From Podarcis bocagei (Eukaryota): a DNA stretch of 64,000 nucleotides. The stretch is taken from the NCBI GenBank assembly GCA_964188305.1, contig OZ076892.1; one strand, given 5' to 3'. This document shows positions 12,101-54,100 of this stretch, piece by piece (within the stretch, counting starts at the first letter, position 1; the number at the start of each line of letters is the position of its first letter). Under the pieces are notes generated by a model. That model saw only the letters and a list, made by a program, of their open reading frames with translations. It was not told the DNA's origin and searched no databases. The position numbers and the translations under genes are program-made.

Positions 12101-12898
12101 AATCCCGTGGATTAGAAAAGCGGCGCCCGGGGCTGCAGGAGGAACCCGTCGCAGCCGTCGAAGGCGCCTCTCCTGCCCTGTCGCAATCTTCAAACCGGAG
12201 CCCTCGAGGCGCTCTGCCGAGATGGATCTCACCCCCGCCCCACCCCACCCCATAAACTATACTACGAGGAATCGAAATAAACACCAACATAGGGAAAGGA
12301 TCAGCCAGGAGACCTCGGCGGGCAACAAAGCCCGAGGAAGAGCAGAAGAAGGGACAGCCACAAAAAGACGCGAGCGCGCCTAGACGCCACGGAGAGGGGC
12401 TCACTTCAGACAAATACTCGAAATCGTGCAATCGCCTCCCCTGGCCCAGCACGCAAAGCCCCCAGTCCTCTTCCAGGTCCGGAAAAGTCATCAGACGGTA
12501 TCCCCCTCTCCCCGCGCGCGCCGCCGCCTTCTCACCTTGGCCCAAAACGTGTCCCCGGGGCAGGTCTCCGTCCGGCACCTCGATGGTGAAGACTTTGGAG
12601 GTGAAGCCAGCGGAGCAAGGTTGCGTCGGGTCCGCTAGCAGAGTCCCCACCTGAGAGGGGCAAACGGAGGGACAGTCAGGCACCTGAAGCCTCAGGGAAG
12701 CGGGAAAGGGAAACGTGCCCCTGTGCCCCCCTCCCCTCGAGGAACAACATCTCGCCCAGGGCACTGATGCGCCCCTCCGCTCTCCTTCCCCGGGATCCGC
12801 TGTTTACCGACACCGTCCTTCGGGGACCCGCTTAGTTAGGTACTCACCTCGAGGAGGAGAAACAAGAGGGCCCGCAGGCAGCTCCGCGGGAGCCCCAT
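179..12898 (-). CDS. CDH3: Type I classical cadherin, CDH3 (P-/B-cadherin-like), exons 1-5; 3' part continues beyond the left edge
   Basis: GT-AG exons in frame: 12898-12848 ([17 protein letters not shown], signal peptide), 12650-12536 (115 nt), 1917-1697 (prodomain), 721-575 (…LKRQKR|[23 protein letters not shown]), 334-179 (156 nt, [52 protein letters not shown]). Furin site, Trp2, PEN and LDRE motifs and a long intron 2 are present. CDH3 rather than CDH1 rests on the MGLPR N-terminus and B-cadherin-like EKETGWMKV, recalled from memory. Confidence 0.85.
1096..1321. mobile_element. Tc1/mariner (Tigger-like) MITE
   Basis: TA|CAGTGATACCTCAGGTTA … TAACCTGAGGTACCAGTG|TA; a related copy is at 32238-32467. 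Confidence 0.8.
4561..4926 (-). mobile_element. Sauria SINE
   Basis: (AAGGTA)n tail, i.e. (ACCTTT)n on minus; core gcggtacctatttatctacttgcac; tRNA-like head; flanking GCAGCTGCCTTA direct repeat. Confidence 0.85.
4990..5125. mobile_element. Palindromic hAT MITE (136 bp)
   Basis: CAGGCA…TGCCTG ends, perfect 8-bp TSD GTCTACAC, internal hairpin ctacaactcccat…atgggaattgtag. Confidence 0.85.
5345..5586. mobile_element. Tc1/mariner (Tigger-like) MITE
   Basis: TA|CAGTCGTACCTTGGTT … AACCAAGGTATGACTG|TA terminal inverted repeats. Confidence 0.8.
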
Positions 12899-13500
12899 CG
12901 CCGCGACGAGAAGCGAAAGCGCCGCCGTCGGCAAAGAGAAACCTCGCCGGAGCTCCGGGCGCGTCCCGCGTTGCTTCGCCTGGAGCTGCCTGGGCTGAAG
13001 GAGGCCCCCTCGCGTCGCCCGCCTGCTTCGCCTGCTACTACCACTGCGGGGCTCCGCCCGGCCTGCCCGGCGCCTTTAAAGCCGCCGCGCCAGGTGAGGC
13101 TCCGCGGGCGGGGCTCCCGCTGCCACCGCCCGGCCCCTCCCCGCTCGCCCGGGTCTTGCAAAGGCGGGCAGGGGGCGAGACCGGCTCCATCGCTGCAAGG
13201 GGAGGGGGCGGACCTCTCCCCCCCCCACCTGAAACTTGGTGTCGACGGCTGTGTTTCGGTTACGCGGGGGGCGCTTTTCTGGCAGGGGGAGCCTCCCTCT
13301 TGATTCAGCACCCGCTTCCAAATTGCTTTCACCTCCCTACAGCGCTAAACGCGATTTTAGCTCTCTGCATTTTTAACGAGGGTTCAGCTGGAGGCTGCAT
13401 TTGTCAAAATAAAAAGTACCCAAAGGAGGAAATAAAACTTTTACAGTGATATCCTCAAAAAGGGATTGTCCAAATCTCTCTTTGGTTTCTCGCTCCCACT
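11900..13500 (-). promoter_or_regulatory. CpG island / promoter of the CDH3-like gene
   Basis: Very GC- and CpG-rich across exons 1-2. TTTAAA TATA-like element at 13075-13080, E2-boxes CAGGTG 13091-13096 and CACCTG 13226-13231, and GC boxes upstream of the ATG. Confidence 0.75.
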
Positions 13501-16718: not shown

Positions 16719-16858
16719 NNNNNNNNNNNNNNNNNNNNNNNNNNNNNNNNNNNNNNNNNNNNNNNNNNNNNNNNNNNNNNNNNNNNNNNNNNNNNNNNNN
16801 NNNNNNNNNNNNNNNNNNNNNNNNNNNNNNNNNNNNNNNNNNNNNNNNNNNNNNNNNN
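16719..16858. other. Assembly gap (140 N)
   Basis: Run of N, flanked by a CR1-type tail fragment and a Sauria SINE. Confidence 1.
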
Positions 16859-22200: not shown

Positions 22201-25200
22201 ATGTGCTTCTTTAGGGTCAGCCTCCTGCTCTTCCTGGTTCTTCACTCTCAGGTAGGATTGTCCTCCAAAGAGCAAGCGAAGCGGGGCAAGTATCTTTGGT
22301 GTTGTAGAAGGATCTTCTTGGCATTAATGGTGGAGGGGCTGGGTTAAGTGTTTTGTAGGTGCAGAAGAGGTACCAACACATGAACCCACTTGATCACACC
22401 AGGCCAGGCTCTTCGTCCAACTAGTGTTTATTAGTAGCAATTCCCCAAGGCTCCAGGCAGTGATTTTGCTGTGCTGCTGAAACCAGAAATCCTTAAGGAT
22501 GGCAGCGGCTGGGTTTGAATCTGGGAATTCCTGCATGCAAAGTACAGGTGCTGTCCCCCAGCTGTGTTGCCATGGCCTTGTGGAAGAGCTGGGGTGTGGG
22601 GATAAAGATGAAGAGGAGCATGAACAGAGTGTGGGGGAGATGTGACCACCGAGTGAGCATGGGAAGGTTACTGGGCTGAGGAAGGTTTCATAATATTGGG
22701 CTTGTGTCTCTCTACACTGTACTCTGCTGGCAGCATAGTTGTTCAAAGCAAATAGGTTTCGAGAAAATAAGAGCAGTTGACAATGTTCCAAACTAATGTT
22801 GAATCAGCAAACATGCATTTCCTTTAAAAACAACCACCAGGGAGCACAAACCTTTAAACTGTAAACAGGGACCTTGAATCTTCCATGGGCTGCAAAGCAT
22901 CTAGCCTTGGAGAGGGATCAGATAACACAAATAAGGCTAGCCCAAGGGGTCAACAAGATGTTGGCCATGGGTGTGGGAGCCGTGGCAAGGCCTCTTGGCC
23001 CATCTCTCCTTTATCAGCTCTACCCTTGAATACTGCTCAATAGAGGCTGCAAAACAGACTGGTTGCTACCTGTGGCAGGAAGTGAAAGGACTTCAGGTAA
23101 ATAACAATAATGCAAACCCAATACTGACATTTAAGATAGAAGGAAGATACTCTTGACATAGAGGTGTGTCCAGATTCCAGGACGTGTCTTCCTTCACATG
23201 TTCCAGGATGGAATTCTGAGGTCCAGCACTGTCCTGTCCCGAGATCCCTACAAATCTTAAGGAGTGCCAAACTTGTCTTCACATAGAAGACGCCATGGGA
23301 TTGGGCTCTGAATGAGGGTTTTTTTAAAAAATAATGCAACTCTCTTTCCCCCTTGCAGGTCTCATTCCTATTTGCTTGGGCAGAAGTGCTGACCTTTCCA
23401 GAATCCAGACTTGATCTGAAGAGGCAGAAAAGGGATTTGCAACTTCTGCCTCCAATATTGGTCATGGAGAATGGCATCGGTCCCTACCCCAAGCGTCTGC
23501 TGCAGGTATAGACAGAGAGGGCAACTGCCTCTTTCTCTTCATGTGCCTTGAACAGCTCAGAACCACTATGCTTGGAGGACTTCTTTTCCTCCTATGAACC
23601 TGCTCAGAATCCCTCTCTGTGTTCTACCTCTGAGGGAGGCATAGAGGGAGGCAACAAGAAAACAGACCTTCTCAGTTTTGACATGTTCATTTGCTACCAG
23701 GCAGGTAAAGATGGCATGACTTTCTACAGTGTCACTGGGACTGGTGCAGACAGACCTCCTCAAGGTATCTTCATCCTTGAAAGAGAGACAGGCTGGCTGA
23801 TGGTGACCATGCCATTGGACAGAGAGACCAAAGACAAATACATTGTAAGTCCCTTTGTGCTAGCTTCTGCCACCCTGGAACCTCCCAGCACCTCTTAAAA
23901 CTGCCTTTGCCAACCTGGTGCCTTCCAGATCCTTTGGACTACTGCTGCCATCAGCCCAAGCATCATATAGCTGTGCTGGCTGGAGCTGATGGGACTCGTA
24001 GTTCAAAACTGCTGGAGAGCACCAGGTTGAGGAAGGCTGCTACGTGTTATGGGGCAGGGAAAGAGTGGAAATCACATGTTTGCTGCTGCTTTATGTCAGC
24101 TTTTGGGGAATCCCCGGGAAGCAATAGTATTAGCAACCATTATTTATGGGAAGGAGGAGAAAGTTCAGCTTAGTTTCATTTCTGAATTCTCAGCATACAG
24201 TATCTAAATACTTTTTAGCCCCTAATGTAAATTCCTGGGTGCTCTCGGTGTGAAGAGAAGGGCAGCTCTACACTCTTGTGGGAAGGTGTCTGGGAGGGTG
24301 AGAGGCAGCTTTGGGGAGTGTCTCAATTGCTACCCTGCTTGCTCTGCAGCTCTTTCTTCACGCTGTAAGTGCAACTGGGCAGCCTGTGGGGAACCGCACA
24401 GAGATCGTCATCAAGGTGCTTGATCAGAATGACAACAAGCCCCGTTTTACCCAGAGCATCTTCCATGGCTCCATAGCAGAAGGAGCCCCGCCAGGTACGT
24501 GTCTGTCTGTCTGGTTGCACATGCATGAACGAACTGACTGTATGGAAACCCCTAATATTTGCCTCTGAATGCCCATATCCTTTGGCCATTCTTTATGGAA
24601 GGAGAACCCACAGGGGGAGGGGGTATAATATTGTGTGCAAAACCCAGGCCCCTAACTGTGCTTTTTTCTACCTGTATGGCCTGGGCAGTCACTACTGAGC
24701 CCACCATAACTTGCGGACTGGCATAAAGGCAGTGCAGATCGCACCCAGCTGCTGCAGTTTGCAGAGGCTAAGAGGTAATTTTGGAGCTGTCTGGGGCAGA
24801 GTCAATTTGACCTCCAAGCTGGGATGATCTGGCTATGTTGCGGGTATGTGTGTGATGCACTTCAGAAGCTGAACTTTGGACCTTTGTGGCACACGCACCC
24901 AGGTACCTTTGTGACACAAGTATCAGCCACTGACATGGATGACGCTGTGAATTCCTACAATGGGGTAATCACCTACTCCCTCGCTATCCAGACCCCCACA
25001 AAGCCACAGAGCCAAATGTTTGCCATCGATAATAAAACAGGGGTCATCAGCTTGAACAAACCAGGACTTGACAGAACGGTAAGTGGCTGGGTCCTGGCTG
25101 TGTAGGGAGAGGGCATGATTAATGATGCTAATTTCCCCTTTGAGGCAACCCTTGGCTCTGCTGCTGTGCTTTACTCCTAGTGGAAACACTGGGCCATAAG

Positions 25201-26265
25201 GCACTGGTGGATTAGAGGCTAGCTGGGGGGGGGGGGACCAAGCAGGATGGGGAGGGGCTTGCAAGGGATTTCTGAAAGAGAAGAGGGAAGGCTTTGAGTC
25301 TGGAGCAGATGAACAGCATGACTGCCGCCTTCCAGTATCTGGAGGGCTGCCCTACAGAAGATGAAGTGGACATAAGCTGTACACATTTAAAGCACATGGC
25401 TTCCTCCAAAGAATCCTAGGAACTGCAGTTTGTCAAGGGTGCTGGGAATTGTAGCTCTGTGAGGGGCAAACTACATTTGCCCAAATCCTTTGGGGGAAGT
25501 CATGTGCTTTAATGGTATGGTTTGCAAGAATTAAGCATTTTCTTTTCACATTTTCCTAATAATAAGGGTGGTCTACCACAGGCATAGGCAAACTTGGCCC
25601 TCCAGATGTTTTTGGTCTACAACTCCCATGATCCCTAGCTAGCAGGACCAGTGGTCAGGGATGATGGGAACTGTAGTCCCAAAACATCTGGAGGGCCGAG
25701 TTTGCCTGTGCCTGGTCTAGCATAACAGCTGTGTCCCATTTCAGTTTGCTGTATCTGGAAGTACCCTAGTGAGTTTAAAGTTTCCTCAAGTTACTTGGCC
25801 AGTGGGGCTCTCAGGATCTTATACAACACTGCTTTGCCATGTGGTGCTTTGATCCCCTTTGCCCAAATGCTGATGGAATTATTTGTTTACAGGTAACCCC
25901 CCAATACACTCTGATCCTGCAGGCTACAGACTGCTTAGGAGAAGGTCTTAGCACTACAGCAACAGCAGTGATCCAAGTAAGGACTGGGAACTCACAAATA
26001 CTCCCGGGTAACCATGTGACTGCTCCTATATCTTCATTTTTGCTCTTGCTGAGGCATGACAGTATTGCCTATTCTCCCACAAAATGCTTGCTGCATTTTA
26101 CTCCAGTGAGAAGTCCCAAGAACTTCAAATGCATATTTTACAGATTAGGCTGAGTAGAGGTGGAGATGGAACCCTCCCCCCTTGCCCTGAAATGAATTGG
26201 GCCCCTTTCTCATGTTTTCAGGGGGCACCCGGTTGAGCCTGCCCTCATGGCACCAAAAGGGTTAA
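22201..26265 (+). CDS. Truncated E-cadherin-like paralogue: signal peptide + furin site + EC1-EC2 only (predicted secreted); 3' end uncertain
   Basis: In-frame GT-AG exons: 22201-22251 ([17 protein letters not shown]), 23359-23505 ([25 protein letters not shown]|[24 protein letters not shown]), 23701-23844 (…[22 protein letters not shown]), 24350-24494 ([31 protein letters not shown]…), 24903-25078 (…[13 protein letters not shown]…GLDRT), 25893-25976 or 26007 ([28 protein letters not shown]…), candidate terminal exon 26222-26265. Exon sizes and phases (51, 147, 144, 145, 176) match classical cadherin exons 1 and 4-7. No stops or frameshifts. Confidence 0.85.
25579..25714. mobile_element. Palindromic hAT MITE (136 bp), in an intron of the cadherin-like gene
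   Basis: CAGGCATAGGCAAACT…AGTTTGCCTGTGCCTG; TSD GTCTACCA/GTCTAGCA. Confidence 0.85.
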
Positions 26266-27413
26266 GACTTTCTGCTGAGTCATGACAGGCAGGCAGCCTG
26301 CCAGTGGAAGGCAAGAAGGAAGTGGAGTCAGAAGGGGCTGCATCAGAAATGCCCCAGAATGGATGAGAGAAACCAACTACCACAGAGGGACGGAGGAGGG
26401 AGACCCCAGGTGGTGAGAGATCCTAGGACGGTGGGTGGGCTCAGCCCAAGAGAAGGGAAAGCCTTCCTGCTTTGGTGTTTCATTGGGAAACTTGGCAAGG
26501 GGGTGGGAATGTATATTTCTGGCAGCTCAAGAAAAACAAGAAGCTTGAATGCCACACTCTTGATTGTCTTGGGGAGTTTCCTGGCATGGGCCAGAAAGTA
26601 AAGGAACTCTGTGGCCAGGGATCAAATGTTTAAGAAGGCAGTGAAATAATACATGGGGCAGGAAGGAGAGGGGCCACTGTTCAGTCCCACCTTCTGGGTG
26701 GAGAGGGGTCATAACTCAGTGTTCTTAGGTTCATCCCCAACATCTCCAGATAGGGCTAGGAAGGACCTCTGTTTGAAACCCAGGAGTACTGCTCTGCCAT
26801 GCTTAAGAGCAGAGGAATGCACTTGTCAGGCAGGGCTTCTCTCAAGAGGCTGGTGTTGTAAGGCACCTGCCCAGGCCCATCCTGACGCAGCCAGTGGGGA
26901 CCACTGCTGACCTTCACTGCCCCTGAACCTCCTCTGCACCTTCATTACTTGCTCACCTGCCCTCTCTGTACAAACAGTGGCAGGCACTATGTCAAGCTGC
27001 AGGGCTACAATTTGGGCAAATGAATGGGCAATGTGGACAGCAGCAAGCAAGCAGGGTCTGCCGAGGGCATCTTGTCTTTAACCCCCCCCTCACCCAGGAG
27101 CCAGCAGAGTTTGTATTTGAACACACAGCTGGTGGATGGGTGAGAAGTGGGTGGGGTGGGGTCCTCCCTCTCTCCCCACAACCACAACACCCCACAGAAA
27201 GCTCCCGTGCACACAGCACCTGGGAGAAAAAGCAAACATTTAAAAACAGGAAAAACTGCTGAGGGCAGCAAGAAAGAGCTTGGAAAATAAGGGCCTGCTG
27301 CTGAGGGTGGCAAGGACATCTTCCTTTGGGAATCGATGGACCTAGGAAACTGGGAGGGGGAGGAGCTCATACAGAGGCTTTTGCTCCACCCGGCTCTCCG
27401 TTCTGAATCCCAG

Positions 27414-28331
27414 GTGGCTAGTTCCGATGAGGTCCACCAAGCTTTCCTGACTGTCCACGCACTGAACGTGCTCACCGGCCTCCCTGCCCAAGGCCTGGCC
27501 ATGCACTTCTCTAAGCTGGAGGACCCCCAACGTCCGTGGGCAGAGCTCATGAGGAGGTAGGAGGGGATGAAGCAAGACAATCTCCCTCCCTCGGTAGGGC
27601 TGGGGCCGTTGCAGTTTCAGCCTCATTTATTCCGTTCCAGCAAGACAAACCCTGATGGGCGCTTGGACAGAAACAGCCCGATGCCCAGGGAGCTGAAACC
27701 TGGCACCTATAAGCTGCGCTTTGAGACGAGGGAGTACTGGGAGCAACAAGGATACCGCAGCTTCTACCCTTATGTGGAAGTAAGTTTGGTTCCCAGATGA
27801 AACTCACACCTGGAAGGGGGGGAAGGCTCCTTCCAACATAGGGAGGACTGATGATGGCAGGGACCACCACTCACTGCCCTTTGAGGGATGTAATTCCTGG
27901 CAGGAGAAGCACAACGTTGGAAAATGGGAGAAATCAGCATAAACTTCACATTATGAAGGCTGCACGCTGTGAAGTCCCTCAGAAACCTGCAGGAAGAGGC
28001 CCAGGTGGTTGGTAGGAGAGCTAGATGTTGTGCATGGGACATCCCTGAAAGAGCACAAAGCCAGAAGTGTGCGAGGACTGGGCACTAGGGGTGCTCCGGA
28101 CCAGGCATTTGGGCCCCTGACAAATGTCTTCTCATGGGCTAGGCCCAGTGCAGCGAAGAAAGGATCTCAAACCAAAGAGCACTACCAACCTCCTGCTATT
28201 CCCCCCTCCCTTGTCTTTACGCATCCTCTTGTCTCTCTGTTTAGATTGTCTTCACCATCACAGAGGAAGAAAAAGTGCACATCCCCTTGCTGCTCAGCCC
28301 CTATTCCTACACCACCTACAGGGGAAGCTAG
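27414..28331 (+). CDS. URAH: 5-hydroxyisourate hydrolase (transthyretin-like protein); three core exons, first coding exon unresolved
   Basis: Exons 27414-27556 (VASSDEVHQAFLTVHALNVLTGLPAQG…), 27641-27779 (KTNPDGRL…GTYKLRFETREYW…SFYPYVE), 28245-28331 (IVFTITEEEKVHIPLLLSPYSYTTYRGS*). Catalytic His, Arg and His plus the C-terminal YRGS signature are present. Adjacent to GAS8, as in mammals. Confidence 0.93.
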
Positions 28332-28952
28332 TGGGAGACCGGCCAGCAGGAGGGGCTGCTTCAGCAAACCGGGGTGCCTGTTCTGAGAGAGATGATGCAG
28401 TCCAGCGGATGGAGAGCTGTGGTTGCATCCACGGCCACCTCTGGCCCGAGCCTCAGGCTGGGGGCTTGGCCATGAGCAGCTGCCTGGTAGTAAATGTGAG
28501 ATTAATCTAAAGACTGATACTTGTAAGCCTCTTGTTTTAAATTGGAGATGCCATGAATTGGGTCTGGGTCCTTGACACACATGTGCTCTACTGATTAGGT
28601 AGGGCTCCCTCAGTTGCTGGGGAACATGAGTGGGGAGAGGGCTGCTGCACTCATGTCCTGATTGTGGGCTTCCCAGAGGCATCTGCTTGGCCACTGTGGG
28701 GAACAGGATGCTGGACTAGGTAGTCCTTTAGCCTGGATCCAGGAGCCAGGCTCTTCAGAGGTGCTTGAGTGGACGCAACATTGGTGTGGAGGACTTTGGA
28801 GGCTCTAGATAAGGTGGGATTAAGGAGTTCAGGGGGTCATTAATCAAGAGGAGGATGCTTTTCAAGTCCCCAAGCTCTGCCTTGATGTGGGTGGGAAAGA
28901 AAAAGGGAGGCTTTGCAGAGACTGAAGACTGAATAGCCCACCACAGGGCCTC

Positions 28953-36700: not shown

Positions 36701-39700
36701 CTCGTGATTCTTCATCAGTGTGTTGATCTGTCCATTCTTCCTCTCCTCAATCTCATGGATTTCAGTTTTCCTGCGCAAGTCTAGCTCGTCGCGTAGGACC
36801 CGCATCTTCTTCTCATACTTGGCCTCGATCTCTGGGGAAGCAGCACCCAGGGCAGACTGAGTGCTCTACTAGGCAAAAAAGTGACAAGGCTATGCATGCC
36901 TCTATCTGTGGGCTGTTCCTCTATGCTGTGTGGAAGAGGAGATGGGGCAAAGTGTTCTCCAGCTCCAACAAGAGGGTGAAGCAAGACTCTAGGCTGACTG
37001 GAAAATGTTGTCACCCAAAGGCACTGGAGGTGCTCAGACTATATACAAACAACTCTGAGCAAAGGATGGGCCCATGGAGCCTGGCATTCTACAAAGCTCC
37101 CGGCAGAGATGGAATACATAGAAGGCCTAGCAAATGGCACTTCTGTGCCTAGCTATTTTGACACATTTAATTTGTTGAGGAGCTTAGAACTGCTGTCAAG
37201 TTCCACCTTATAATGCATGTGGCATTTCAAGTAAGCCTCAGGCCCTGCCCTCGGAATGACTGCAAAACAGACAGGAGCTGGTATGCAAGACAGGTCCTAC
37301 GCAAATCTGTGCTCTCTATCAAGCTGCTACTTAGCCTCAATTACACACAACATAGAGCGGACTCATGAGATGGGCTTTACACACCATTGCTACAAAGTCA
37401 CACACATACACCTTCCAGAAAAGTGAGACTGTGCCATAAGGAAGCAGCTCCCTTGTCACTGCATGTGTGAGAGAAAGGGCGCCCAAGGGACGAAGTGACA
37501 CTGTGGCCCACTGATCCTTCCTTGGGCACAAAGATAGCCTTCCCTTCCAAACCCAAACCCTTCAGCTTTTGGTGGCGAGCCCCAGAACTGACCTTTCACC
37601 TGCCTCTCAAAGTCATTGCGCAATCGTGTTATGTCTTCTTGTTGTTTCTGCCAAGATGATGAAACTGGTTAGTGACAGATGTTGCGTATACTCCTCCCTA
37701 GCTCAGAAGCAAAGCTAAGGCTGGTTTGCTCTGGAGGAACAACTGAGGTTTAAGAACCACCACCCCTCTCTTCCCACCCGCACACCATGCACTCAGCAGA
37801 AGTTGGCCTGAGCCCAGCCCAGCAGCCAAGTCCGGCATCACTTTAGACATACCAGCCGAAGGTTCTTCACCACCATCTCGTTGGACAGCTCCTGCTCCTT
37901 CAGCTCCACCTTCAAGGTGCGCATGTCCTTACGCAGTTCCATCTCCTGGGACCGGTGATCCTTCTGGGCCAGCTTCATAGACACTGTGCTCTCTGCCTTT
38001 AGCTCTGTGATGTTGTTCTGGTGCTCGTACAGCAGGTGCTTCACCTTCTGCTTGTAAACCTGAGACAAAAGGAAGATGAGGCAAGCGTTAGGCCCTCATC
38101 AGCCAAGGTACTCTCTTTTGCAGAGGCCTGAGTAAATGAGAGGTACTTGTGGCTACTCAGGGGAAGGGGATGGAAGTCAGTTGAGGTGCCCCAGCCAGGG
38201 GTGCCAGACCAACCAAGCTGGTGACCAACTCTGCCTGCAGTGCTGTGGCTCCAAGTTCATCAAGTACCAGGAAGTGAAGAAGATTCAGGAGCATGTGAGC
38301 CTCTATGTCTTTATGCCAAAATAACAGACCCTTCCAATGCCATAGCCATTTCCTCACTTTCCATCCACAACATTGCGGGGCTGCCCAAGCCAATATCTAG
38401 CTGCTCAACCACAAGTGGAGGCACCATGGGTCAATGGTTGCAGAGAGCATGTTTCACAGGCAAAAGGTCCCTAGTAAAAGGTTGTTGGGTTAGTACCAAT
38501 GGGAAATGTTTTATTTTACTTAAATACATACTCCATACAAAGCAGCTCATGTTTTTATCACTCACCTGTTAGGGATGCTAGCTGTGATTCCTGCACTGCA
38601 GGGGGTTGAACTATATAACCCTTGGAATTCCTTCCAGCTCTACAATTCTGTGATCTGTGAAGTCCACAGGCTCTTACCTTGATCTCCACCTGGTGACGCT
38701 CTTCGGCTTCCTCCATCTCACGGTCCTTGTTTCGTAGTTCAGCCTTCTTCTCATCCAGCTGCCGCCGAGTGATCTCCCAGAAAGTGTGGATCTTGTCTCG
38801 CTCCAGCTGGAAGTAGTTGCGTTCTTCCCGCTCACGGTCCAGCTCCTCCCGGATGCGGCCCATGTGTTCCTCCAGCTGCAAAGCCAAGAAGAGGGTCAGC
38901 CAACAGTCGGGCTGGAGCCGAGAGGAAGGACTGGGAGCCCACCATCGCCACTACTGGCACTGTGCCTTTTCTGACAGTGAATTCCAAAGCTTTTACTTTT
39001 TCTTTTCAAGCCAAGGTTTTCCTGTGAACTGGCATGGGAAGCATGGCTAATTTCGGAAAGGGTGCAACTGTTTCATTTCAGAATGCATGATAAATAGGTG
39101 AATGAATTATCTGGTTAGAGAGAGGCTTGGCTGCATGAGTCTGTTGCTCTCTGGAAGTGGCTAAATCAGCTTAGAATGTTTAGGGCAGTCTTTGCCAACC
39201 TGGTACCTTCCAAATGTGCTGGTTGTCATCTACCATCAGCTACACTGATGGGTTTGCTGGCTGGGGTTAATGGGAGATGCAGCCCAAAACACCTGGAAGG
39301 CATCAGGATGGCAAAGGCTGTTCCTGTGCAATATTCTCACAATACCTGTACCCAAAAAGTAAAATGGAACTGTGAGCTTAGCTATATTTGCTACCCTATG
39401 GAATGCAGAAGGATGTAGTAAGGAACAACATGGACCCCTGGCAAAATAGTGGCTTCTCCCAATGCTGGTCCTCAGTGCTGTAGTGAAGTGTCAGAGGGAT
39501 GGAAAGAGTGTACCTGCAACAAGCCAGCTGAGGGACTGCATGACTCACACTTGGTCTTACTCCTAGCCAGGAAGGTCGGAGATAATGAGGGTAGGCCAAT
39601 CACCCCATACATCACTCCACCCCAAAATGAGAGACACCTTGACCATTCTCTAATGTGATACAGGCCAGGGGTGGGAAACATGAGTGGCCTGCAGGGTGTT

Positions 39701-51100: not shown

Positions 51101-54100
51101 GAGAAAGCTATTAAGGAGTGAGGCCGCAGGAGGAACCTGCAGGAAGAGCAACAGCAAATATCTTAAGCTGAAGTTTAAGTGGAAGAACCGTGGGAGACGT
51201 TTTTGACATGGTGCCAGTCTCTGCTAGATGCAAGGAGGGGATAACACACACACACACACACACACACACGGGAGACAGCCAAGTTGCAGCTAGACATGGT
51301 TGACGCGGCAGGCTGGATTAATCCCTGCAGCCGAATTCAGTACAGGAGGGTGAAGAAATGCAAAAATGGAGAGCCAAAGAAAAGAGGAATGCTGTAGCTC
51401 AGCTGAACGGTGACCCAACATCTGAGCTTTGGTAGAAGCAGGGGATGGAAATTGTTCCTTGGTTTCTCATCTGCCATGGATAAGTTGTAGGAGTGGCCTG
51501 GATAAGGAGCTGGAGTTTAAGAACAGAGAAGCATTAGAAAAACCTGCAGGATCAGGCCAGTGGCCCATCTAGTCCAGCATCCTGTTCTCACAGTGGCCCG
51601 TGATGTGCCTGTGGGAAACCCTCAAGCAGAACCTGAGTGCAAGTGGTCTACAGAAGGATTACAGCCTCAGACTGTGGAGGCAGAACCGTCGTGGCTAGTA
51701 GCCATCCAGGCTGGTGTCAGTTTAGGGGTCTGTTCCCAGAATTCACTGCAGAAACAAAGGGCAGTCCCACTCAGCTTCCTTCATGCCAATTGGGGGGGGG
51801 GGGCTTGTATGGGAAACAGGCCTCTCCTACCTGTTGGCCACCAAGCCTGACTGTATCCACCTGAACTGAAAAGGGATGCTGATGCTGGGTGGGTGGGTCT
51901 GATCAGGCCTGGGTAGTGATTCTCCCTCTGCTCTCCTACCATGTCTCCTGTAAGCAGATGCAACCCTTTGTCGTTTCAGAGCTGATTAAAGGGGCCCAAA
52001 CGCCAGAGCGGCTGGCCCCCATTATTGTACCCATACATGGACTGGTGGAAGAGCCCCACAGCCCCCCTGCTGAGGAAGAAGGAGGGATCCCAATCCCCAC
52101 TTCCGGGCTGCTGCAGGTTGCAGAGCGCAGGCGTAAGTAAAATCTGGAAGGAAGGAGTTGGCTCTCTGCTGACTGTAGGAGAAGGCAAAGAGCTTTCTGG
52201 GCCCCTAGCCCAGCTCAGCAACTCCCCCTGAGACCCTGGACTCCCTTACAGCTGCATCTCCTGGGAGCTGCAGAAAGGCCCATCTGGGAGCTTACCACAA
52301 ATAAGAAGCATACTTTGCATTCATTTAAAGTGCAGAGGCTAAAAGGCTGAGCTACGGAATCAGGAAAGTCCCTGGCTCAAATCTTGCCTCTGCCATTAAC
52401 CCGCCAGTGTTCCCTCTCAGGCCTCAGTTTGCAGACCATCTGCAGTGTGGGGAGGGCATGTCCGAGTCCAGGACAACTGACCCTATCAGAGAGCCTTCTC
52501 ATCTGTTCCCACACTGCCTAACCGGTCATGGTTCTCACTGACATTTTGTCTCCGCAGAGCCTTTGAGCAGCGTCTCCTCCCTCGAGGTGCACTTTGACCT
52601 TCTGGACCTAACTGAGCTTACAGACATGTCTGACCAGGAGCTGGCGGAGGTCTTTGCTGACTCCGACGATGAGAATACAGGCAATGAATCCCCTGCTGGT
52701 AAGCATGGTCTCTCGATTGAATCTTACACCAATTAATTATGCAAGCTTGAAAATGGAGGAACTAATTAGTCCAGGGGTCTGCAACCTTTAAGACAAAAAG
52801 AGCCACTTGGACCTGTTTCCGAAGGAAAAAAAACCTGGGAGCCGCAAAACCATTGCGACATTTAAAACAAATATATCTCCGGAGCCGCGATCTGACAGCG
52901 GGCAGGAAGGTGACGTCGGGACGGTGCGTGACTAACGCACGCACTGCCCCCATGCGACGTCACAGCCAGTACAGCGCCCGCCACAGTGGGGAGTCTCAGA
53001 GCGCACAATGCGCCTCCTCCCCTTGCTAGTATCCGCCCCGGAGCCGCGGCAAAGGTGTAAAAGAGCCACATGCGGCTCCGGAGCCGCGGGTTGCAGACCC
53101 CTGAATTAGTCAATTCCAACTGCATACATCTGCATAGACCTAAGATAGCTCCAAAGGCTGGGGGAGAAACATGTTGGGATTCAAAAGAGGTATCAGCAAG
53201 CTGTGGGCCTTGAAATGTTGCTGGACTACAACTCCTATCATCCTTGACAAAAGAGCGCAAGATGAGACTGCTGGGTCGAGCCAACAGCTGCAGATTAATG
53301 TGGCACTCATCCTGCTAGGCATGTGGGCAGAGGCAGTGTCATATAAATTGGCTTTGCAAAGCAGCTAAGCAAGTGCCTTATCCTGGGGGGGGGGGGTGTC
53401 AGCTGACACCTTTCCACCCATCCCACCCTCTAGTAATCTCACTTGCAAGTGTGAGATTACTTAGGAGAAGCCTATCTGGAGAGGCGACTCTGCTCTCCAG
53501 TTTTGATCCTAGAAATTTTTCTAACCACAAACAAAGTTGCCGTTTCTGCAGCTTCTTAGAATGCTTTCCTTTTTATACCATAGTTCCTGCTGGCCGGGAT
53601 TAATGTTGTTACCCCATTCGGTAGGATTTTATTGATTTCAGTATAAGTCTGATCTCTTGTTCCCCTCCCCAGGCTTTAAGTTTAACAAGAAGCAGTTCAG
53701 ACATGAAGCCACAAAGGGCCTAAGCATCAGATGTACACCCTGAGATCTGTTGCCTTCCAACCTGAAGCATATTCAATTGCAAAATGGCAACTCTGTATGG
53801 TGCCTTACGGCTCCGCAAAGTGTGTTTCTGTACTCAGGTGCCCTAATTTCTTTTTTGTCATGCATCTAATTCTCAAAATTACTTTTAAAAAAGCTGTCGA
53901 TGTTCAGTGCACAAGAGTGAGTCTATGAGGCCCAATTCTTGCAGTGTAATCTTATCCATCTCTAGCCAGAAGTAAGTCCCACTGAGTTCTATGGTGCTTA
54001 CTCCCAGTTAAGTGGGAACAGGATTGCAAACAGAGTAAGATACTTTTAATCAGCTAGGCAAGATCTAGGGCACAAAGACTAGGGCTGTGGCGGGGGGAAG

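Follow-up and report, generated by a model that had tools for sequence, protein, structure and literature searches.

In E-cadherin, strand-swap dimers are abolished by the W2A substitution, the residue K14 forms an X-dimer contact, and the double mutant W2A-K14E also loses X-dimers and bead aggregation (PMC9335211). Natural fusions of the 5-hydroxyisourate hydrolase (HIUase) domain have been reported as well. For example, Urah–Urad fusions (allantoin synthase) exist in plants, diatoms, and bacteria (PMC13751858). In these proteins the partner of Urah is the next enzyme of the pathway, whereas in the gene described here the partner is an adhesion module. This gene lies on the + strand, between positions 22201 and 28332, of a 64,000-nucleotide stretch of contig OZ076892.1 of the lacertid Podarcis bocagei (GenBank assembly GCA_964188305.1), the whole of which is referred to as the window. 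It encodes two extracellular cadherin domains (EC1 and EC2) joined to an HIUase domain, and its EC1 carries lesions in the donor, acceptor, and X-dimer elements of the cadherin adhesion interface.

The engineered E-cadherin EC1–2 mutants W2A, E89A, K14E, and W2A/K14E (PDB 3LNH, 3LNI, 3LNE, and 3LNF) have the same fold as the model of the Podarcis protein (template modeling (TM) score 0.78–0.82, about 56% identity), and both display the same three kinds of lesion, affecting the donor Trp, the acceptor Glu89, and the X-dimer residue 14. However, the Podarcis lesions are natural and genus-wide, are accompanied by a one-residue insertion and the loss of four residues, and reside on an enzyme fusion that is predicted to be soluble rather than on a membrane cadherin. 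Another related case is T-cadherin (CDH13), which is among the weaker structural and sequence matches to the EC1 of the window. T-cadherin has a classical-type EC1 without Trp2, does not strand-swap, and adheres by means of an X-dimer that needs a basic residue 14. Unlike the Podarcis fusion, in which residue 14 is Ile, it is glycosylphosphatidylinositol-anchored and has five EC domains. On the side of the enzyme, transthyretin is a secreted tetrameric descendant of HIUase, and the C-terminal domain encoded in the window matches both families; nevertheless, this domain has kept the catalytic residues and YRGS, and its predicted secretory route is via the cadherin leader instead of a signal peptide of its own. 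Finally, the cadherin-1-like fusions of sauropsids and amphibians (XP_053255873 of P. raffonei, XP_005308254 of Chrysemys, and several snake and bird models) are the same gene as that of the window, although in the non-Podarcis members Trp2 and IKSN are retained, as are Glu89 and Met92 in nearly all of them.

Gene Structure and Expression

The exon junctions are supported by RNA contigs (run X1) from a close relative, 95–99% identical to the window. Exon 1 (22201..22251, +) is an open reading frame with the start codon and a hydrophobic signal sequence that ends at a GT donor; it is identical in the proteins of P. lilfordi, P. raffonei, P. muralis, and Lacerta agilis, and a hydrophobic helix is predicted at residues 4–22 of the fusion. 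Exon A (23359..23505, +), the equivalent of CDH1 exon 4 according to its splice joints and its alignments with EP-cadherin and the orthologs, codes for the signal end and short pro-region, the furin site KRQKR (23419-23433), and the mature N-terminus, where the former Trp2 codon is TTG (23437-23439), an extra Gln is present, and the residue-14 equivalent is Ile. Exon B (23701..23844, +) is the exon-5 equivalent, as judged from the E-cadherin alignment and a Pfam Cadherin match; it is 12 nt shorter, without residues 24–27, and retains the remaining EC1 core (FYSVTG, ERETGW, and LDRE). Exon C (24350..24494, +), the exon-6 equivalent by alignment with residues 76–123 of mouse E-cadherin, contains HAV, VGNRTEI (Gly at 24389-24391 is the Glu89 equivalent, and NRT occupies 24392-24400), and the Ca2+ linker DQNDN. 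Exon D (24903..25078, +), the exon-7 equivalent, is supported by its two joints and a Pfam Cadherin match and begins EC2 with the Ca2+/linker motifs D-x-D-D and N-x-Y-N; its 176 nt agree with the length of human CDH1 exon 7. Exon E (25893..25976, +) is a truncated exon-8 equivalent ending in TATAVIQ, and its donor is joined to URAH (GT..AG) rather than running on into the EC2–EC3 linker.

Three URAH coding exons complete the gene. The first (27414..27556, +), in frame with exon E, contains the linker VASSDEVHQAF followed by LTVHALN with the catalytic His, as aligned with the zebrafish HIUase 2H1X; the second (27641..27779, +), reached through the joint 27556->27641, contains the catalytic Arg in DGR (Pfam PF00576, E = 3.7e-10); and the third (28245..28332, +), which is entered by a loose end of an X1 contig, terminates in HIPLLLSPYSYTTYRGS and the stop codon (Pfam PF00576, E = 4.7e-10). 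In run X1, the GT..AG joints upstream of URAH have depths of 530–830 (22251->23359, with 530, 23505->23701, 23844->24350, 24494->24903, and 25078->25893). Exons A, B, and C have canonical AG/GT sites and junctions that are matched exactly by spliced contigs; the aligner had placed the joint 23505->23701 at 23507->23703, owing to a C>T variant at 23702.

Because spliced contigs join the signal exon, the five cadherin exons, and the three URAH exons in frame, the gene product is a 371-amino-acid cadherin/HIUase fusion, and not a stand-alone cadherin. The spliced frame is open over all 371 codons, and comprises the signal, 25 residues up to and including KRQKR, EC1, EC2, a short linker, and a complete HIUase that terminates in YRGS. 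The joint from EC2 to URAH (25976->27414) has a depth of 1070 in run X1 vs. 28.5 for the unspliced continuation; a stand-alone mini-cadherin ending at the read-through stop at 26153 was therefore rejected, the unspliced branch being a minor form or pre-mRNA. Neither the five EC domains nor the transmembrane segment and catenin-binding tail are present in the transcript, whose cadherin portion stops within EC2 at 25976; on the + strand of the window, no cadherin exons beyond EC2 were detected by motif scanning and tblastn. Likewise, tblastn found no prodomain exons between 22252 and 23358, where the signal exon is joined directly to the exon-4 equivalent. The bulk RNA runs X23 and X24, which carry no information on splicing, have zero reads on the gene and reads only on a repeat; therefore, expression of the fusion gene is tissue-restricted.

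Two other exons touch this transcription unit. An alternative first coding exon (26361..26412, +) with an open frame yields a cadherin-less URAH isoform (MDERNQLPQRDGGGRPQV), as indicated by the joint 26412->27414 in run X5 (depth 21.8), and is also used in the L. agilis isoforms P0219 and P0221. In addition, positions 23043-23095 correspond to an extra 21-codon exon of the P. muralis isoform X1 (P0218), which in the window holds an in-frame stop.

The C-terminal part of the product appears from its motifs to be a complete, enzyme-type HIUase domain. The window protein belongs to the enzyme branch of the HIUase/transthyretin family (PF00576), with the His, Arg, and His residues and the C-terminal YRGS present; and residues 12–122 of the 122 of the URAH part (taken from the P. 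lilfordi protein, P0151) align with 2H1X with LTVHALN, DGR, HIPLLL, and YRGS in register. A separate observation concerns the turtle fusions (P0028, P0087, and P0203-P0213), which have His or Cys for the Arg of DGR and end in YKGS instead of YRGS, so that a loss or change of catalysis is possible in these animals.

Lesions in the Adhesion Interface

The phmmer alignment of exon A with Xenopus EP/C-cadherin places KRQKR and DLQLLPP opposite KRKKR and DW-VIPPIKVSENERG; that is, Trp2 is absent and one residue has been gained. In exon C, VGNRTEI stands opposite VEDPMEI of mouse E-cadherin, with the changes E89G, P91R, and M92T and an N-R-T sequon, and HAV is retained. Position 14 is Ile (ENGIG) in all four Podarcis species compared, and the basic residue for the X-dimer salt bridge has thus been lost. 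As far as the window itself is concerned, these features had been pointed out in a first-pass annotation of the locus, and alignments with EP-cadherin, mouse E-cadherin, and the orthologs confirm every one of them, as well as the open frame, which in addition is expressed and constrained. A further lesion in the same interface had escaped that annotation: the third residue of exon B aligns with residue 30 of mouse E-cadherin, which means that residues 24–27 (IKSN; 12 nt) have been deleted.

The remainder of the two domains is much less affected. Of the 95 EC1–EC2 columns that are conserved at ≥88% in the other orthologs, 10 differ in the window. Four of these changes are conservative (F17Y, E31D, I38V, and I150L), and six are not (W2, the deleted S26, V34T, E89G, P91R, and M92T). 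When the columns are divided according to a hand-compiled strand-swap residue set that was fixed a priori, 4 of 10 have changed within the set vs. 6 of 85 outside it (Fisher P = 0.01); the clustering of changes at the swap interface exceeds chance. By contrast, the Ca2+ ligands of the EC1–EC2 linker (E11, LDRE, DQNDN, DxD, and D195) are all intact in the alignment.

Compared with a type I classical cadherin, the window gene lacks Trp2, the pocket formed by Glu89, Met92, and residues 24–27, the full prodomain (about 130 residues, Cadherin_pro), and the set of five EC domains, transmembrane segment, and tail; the basic residue 14 of a T-cadherin-type X-dimer is missing too. Since the donor (Trp2), the acceptor (Glu89, Met92, and 24–27), and the X-dimer element (residue 14) are all altered, canonical cadherin adhesion is, by analogy with the E-cadherin mutants, very unlikely for the Podarcis fusion. 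The first-pass proposal of a protein repurposed as a non-adhesive ligand or decoy is consequently upheld as far as the non-adhesive character is concerned, but not in its free ligand or decoy part, because EC2 is spliced in frame to URAH.

Fold and Selective Constraint

With 40 orthologs, AlphaFold2 predicts a folded EC1–EC2 (block pLDDT 62–92) and a folded HIUase core (74–94, the short linker and the last residues being ignored). The EC1–EC2 model matches EC1–2 of E- and P-cadherin at TM scores of 0.78–0.89, and Pfam Cadherin matches are found on exons B and D. Selection was estimated from codon alignments of the window with three Podarcis loci (P. lilfordi, P. raffonei, and P. muralis), taking 4,757 intron sites as the neutral reference. 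Within the genus, the cadherin part has accumulated 14 synonymous and 18 non-synonymous changes (omega 0.40 relative to synonymous sites and 0.55 relative to the intron), and URAH 9 and 4, respectively (omega 0.13–0.25). The frame is open in the four species and every indel is a multiple of three.

These data bear on two alternative readings of the cadherin exons. The first one, that they are the decaying remnant of a duplicated cadherin, a pseudogene from which no protein is made, could explain the lost hallmark residues, the truncation after EC2, and the decayed DxNDN linker in the read-through frame. However, this is highly improbable, and was rejected: the transcripts are abundant and precisely spliced, the frame is preserved as described, omega is below 1, and orthologs exist across sauropsids. 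The second one considers the cadherin exons simply as a translated leader, whose frame is kept open for the making and secretion of URAH while the EC1–EC2 sequence itself is indifferent. In fact, an in-frame URAH downstream would purge stops and frameshifts irrespective of any role of the cadherin part, Lacerta gets by on just the signal peptide, and omega of the cadherin part is about twice that of URAH. Even so, a mere leader is improbable, since the non-synonymous changes in the cadherin part are about half of the neutral expectation (18 vs. 32.6, P = 0.004), 85 of the 95 conserved columns and all the EC1–EC2 Ca2+ ligands are intact, and a neutral leader would show changes in the core and in the Ca2+ sites, as happens in exon D of Lacerta. 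The cadherin module is thus best described not as a pseudogene or a neutral leader but as one in which the dimerization surface has specifically been lost, and the rest of EC1–EC2, to judge from the codon counts, appears to remain under purifying selection.

The Fusion in Other Tetrapods

An all-against-all profile search with exon B retrieved seven proteins that begin as cadherins and end as HIUases, and a word search with the URAH part, limited to proteins of at least 333 amino acids, returned 52 cadherin–HIUase fusions. A word search with exon B in its stop-free stretch gave no match among candidates of 70–224 amino acids, which is uninformative since the true relatives have 346–805. The carriers include Podarcis, Zootoca, Rhineura, geckos, Elgaria, Hemicordylus, many snakes, turtles, and more than 25 birds, together with one axolotl gene model that has a full prodomain. 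NCBI labels these proteins cadherin-1-like or B-cadherin-like, and UniRef names some of them hydroxyisourate hydrolase. The snake fusions share an identical AVIQ|VASS junction with Podarcis and the gecko fusions the same beginning of exon A (QVSF...), because of which the Podarcis cadherin exons are considered orthologous to those of the snake and gecko fusions. Moreover, GAS8 is located downstream of the fusion in each of the five loci compared as well as in the window, whose gene fits the sauropsid cadherin–HIUase orthogroup in its signal exon, short furin pro-piece, passage from EC1–EC2 to URAH, and adjacent GAS8. The fusion is an old gene, common to sauropsids plus one amphibian gene model (axolotl). 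It is annotated in databases, yet undescribed in the literature searched (subscription journals being outside its coverage), where no paper on a cadherin–HIUase/URAH fusion or on a secreted HIUase was found; both a review of uricolysis gene fusions (PMC13751858) and a study of sauropsid uricase (PMC10517255) leave cadherin unmentioned. As an object of study, the family is more remarkable than its Podarcis variant.

The adhesion interface was surveyed in 22 aligned orthologs from outside Podarcis. In all of them except Numida, a model without N-terminus, the furin site is followed by D/E and then W (DQW in Rhineura), and the mature N-terminus is almost always DW(V/I)IPP. Residues 24–27 of the IKSN type are present in the 22. 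Position 14 carries R or K in at least 20 of the 22, Numida (R) included, and the one deviating residue is Q, in a bird. Glu89 is found in 20 of the 22 (the exceptions are Rhineura, with V, and Mauremys, with D), and Met92 also in 20 (the exceptions are one snake and one owl). Conservation of the substitutions in orthologs had been set beforehand as a test of the first-pass annotation, and the outcome is divided: the loss of Trp2 is shared by four Podarcis species, whereas outside this genus Trp2 and, with the few exceptions given, Glu89 and Met92 are kept. Rhineura floridana (P0152) represents another lacertoid lineage whose swap apparatus has changed; it has DQWLMSP, with an extra residue before the Trp, as well as Val89.

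The same survey informs about the prodomain. In most orthologs (birds, turtles, snakes, and geckos), the signal exon leads into the exon-4 equivalent, as in the window, and the signal sequence is separated from the furin site by just 12–25 residues. It had been suggested that the loss of adhesion explains why the prodomain became dispensable, an idea that is contradicted by the fact that orthologs with this short pro-region retain Trp2 and Glu89. For that reason, the prodomain was lost long before, and independently of, the interface.

Some snake and bird isoforms or models of the fusion are longer (P0042, P0168, P0040, P0173, P0183, and P0199; 706–805 amino acids) and carry EC1–EC4/5 or a duplicated EC2 ahead of URAH, which suggests that the ancestral locus had two tandem cadherin segments upstream of URAH.

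Lacertid Lineages and the Loss of the Interface

The four Podarcis genomes (the window species, P. lilfordi, P. raffonei, and P. muralis) all have DLQLLPP, the 24–27 deletion, Ile14, and Thr92. At position 89, on the other hand, the window species and P. lilfordi share G, whereas P. raffonei has E and P. muralis has R. At position 91, the former pair has R (NRT sequon), and P. raffonei and P. muralis have P (NPT, no sequon). Since position 89 varies among congeners that share the loss of Trp2, Glu89 was lost after Trp2, and more than once. The Glu89 and sequon changes that had been read in the window are therefore real but not fixed in the genus, and a glycan on NRT as a designed block of the pocket was rejected as a general feature. 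Intron divergence from the window is 1.9% in P. lilfordi, 2.2% in P. muralis, and 3.8% in P. raffonei, and the fusions of these three species have 371 amino acids, with 6–14 differences from that of the window.

In L. agilis, which belongs to the sister genus of Podarcis, a deletion of 1.83 kb without any assembly gap has removed exons A–C, and with them EC1 (L002:3700-4020; window 22990-24821), and exon D is frameshifted; the annotated isoforms go from the signal exon to URAH directly or via exon E. In Zootoca vivipara, URAH is joined to a cadherin segment with prodomain, EC1–3, and Trp2 (L001:3001-19974) in a fusion of 605 amino acids, whose URAH is 96–98% identical. Taking Zootoca as the closest ortholog would imply an extreme burst of change in Podarcis, and this option was rejected. 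Compared with the window, the cadherin exons of Zootoca have a synonymous divergence (dS) of 0.65–1.1 vs. 0.06 for URAH; in the cadherin part only the exons align, and not the introns, while the flanks align at 88%; and the Podarcis-type exon E remains in Zootoca as a frameshifted pseudo-exon (about 17449-17600 of L001). Because of this high dS, the unalignable introns, and the pseudo-exon, the cadherin part of Zootoca is best regarded as a paralog. The three lacertid genera thus exhibit three fates of the cadherin arm, namely a paralogous full part in Zootoca, an adhesion-dead one in Podarcis, and one without EC1 in Lacerta; this argues for weak constraint on the arm in lacertids, with the signal peptide and HIUase as the indispensable part.

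The explanation that we favor, with reasonable though far from complete confidence, is that the interface was lost through relaxed constraint on dimerization, in a module that persists and keeps its fold. This loss would belong to a broader erosion of the lacertid cadherin module, which in Lacerta has been deleted. In the Podarcis lineage, Trp2 would have been replaced by Leu with an inserted Gln, residues 24–27 deleted, and residue 14 left uncharged, after which the pocket at 89–92 would have drifted. The fusion may be secreted by means of its N-terminal signal and cleaved after KRQKR, and it probably tetramerizes through the HIUase domain, as solved HIUases and transthyretin do. By analogy with the W2A, E89A, and W2A-K14E forms of E-cadherin, such a tetramer would carry four rigid cadherin arms unable to strand-swap or to form X-dimers.

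The principal competing explanation is adaptive: selection would have favored the altered EC1 face because it ends homophilic or cadherin binding and recognizes a different partner, or because it serves as a non-adhesive ligand in soluble form, the changes then being functional innovations. Consistent with it, the changes are focused on one functional surface while the fold and the Ca2+ sites are retained, the module is still constrained, and the Podarcis EC1–EC2 is somewhat more diverged, being 57–60% identical to other squamates vs. 64–75% among those, an excess not seen in URAH. The cadherin part outpaces URAH in most other lineages too (amino-acid divergence ratio 0.6–3.4), and the Podarcis ratio, based on small counts, is at or above the top of this range. 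Nevertheless, positions 89 (G/E/R) and 91 (R/P) differ among congeners and the sequon is not shared, a pattern that resembles drift once Trp2 had gone; in Lacerta, signal–URAH isoforms are still expressed although EC1 has been deleted; and neither a candidate ligand nor a new conserved motif was found. We consider this adaptive origin unlikely, although worth serious attention. A newly evolved decoy function is less probable than relaxation, which fits better because the loss is confined to one genus, Glu89 varies, and Lacerta has dispensed with EC1.

Several points, however, weigh against relaxation. An omega below 1 and changes focused on one surface also fit an adaptive switch of binding partner. 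Lacerta, without EC1, and Zootoca, whose cadherin part is paralogous, give no date for the loss of Trp2. Secretion, furin cleavage, tetramerization, and loss of dimerization are all inferred, the confidence of the model in EC1 is only moderate, and the source of the RNA is a close relative, perhaps of a different species from that of the window.

Possible Role of the Fusion

Urah is highly expressed in the liver of uricotelic birds, Anolis, and turtles, although uricase has left this organ (PMC10517255). In birds, turtles, squamates, and one axolotl model, a HIU hydrolase is made behind a signal peptide and two cadherin domains, and secretion of an HIUase with cadherin arms could explain why the liver expresses Urah without uricase. 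In other species, the intact interface may, among other options, let the fusion associate with itself or dock the enzyme on cells that bear cadherins. A more speculative proposal, which we regard as doubtful, is that uricotelic tetrapods share the fusion as a conserved secreted enzyme, present in abundance in a single tissue, probably the liver, whose Trp2 arms normally dock on classical cadherins or cross-link, and that the Podarcis version is adhesion-dead but selected, with another partner or localization. If this were true, the Podarcis version would be a natural experiment that separates the enzyme function from cadherin binding.

The case is of interest for cadherin structural biology, which gains a natural, genus-fixed counterpart of the W2A, K14E, and E89A mutants on an EC1–EC2 that is predicted to be well folded, with close Trp2-bearing orthologs that serve as controls. 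Similarly, the three outcomes in three lacertid genera make the role of the cadherin arm directly testable.

Neighboring Features

A canonical, Trp2-bearing cadherin, detected by the motif scan and tblastn, is encoded head-to-head with the fusion gene on the minus strand (182-334, 575-697, 1652-1918, and 12537-12617), and is presumably a B-cadherin/CDH3-like gene. A CpG-rich promoter region is observed at 12700-13400, about 9 kb from the start of the fusion, and a run of 140 N bases at 16719-16858. On the other side of the gene, there are exons of GAS8 and DBNDD1 (38561-38950, -, and 52542-52733, +). Finally, a repeat resembling short interspersed elements (25579-25719, and also 23920-24000) has an RNA depth of 28,000–60,000 in all four runs, with many loose ends, and inverted copies of it are present in related loci.

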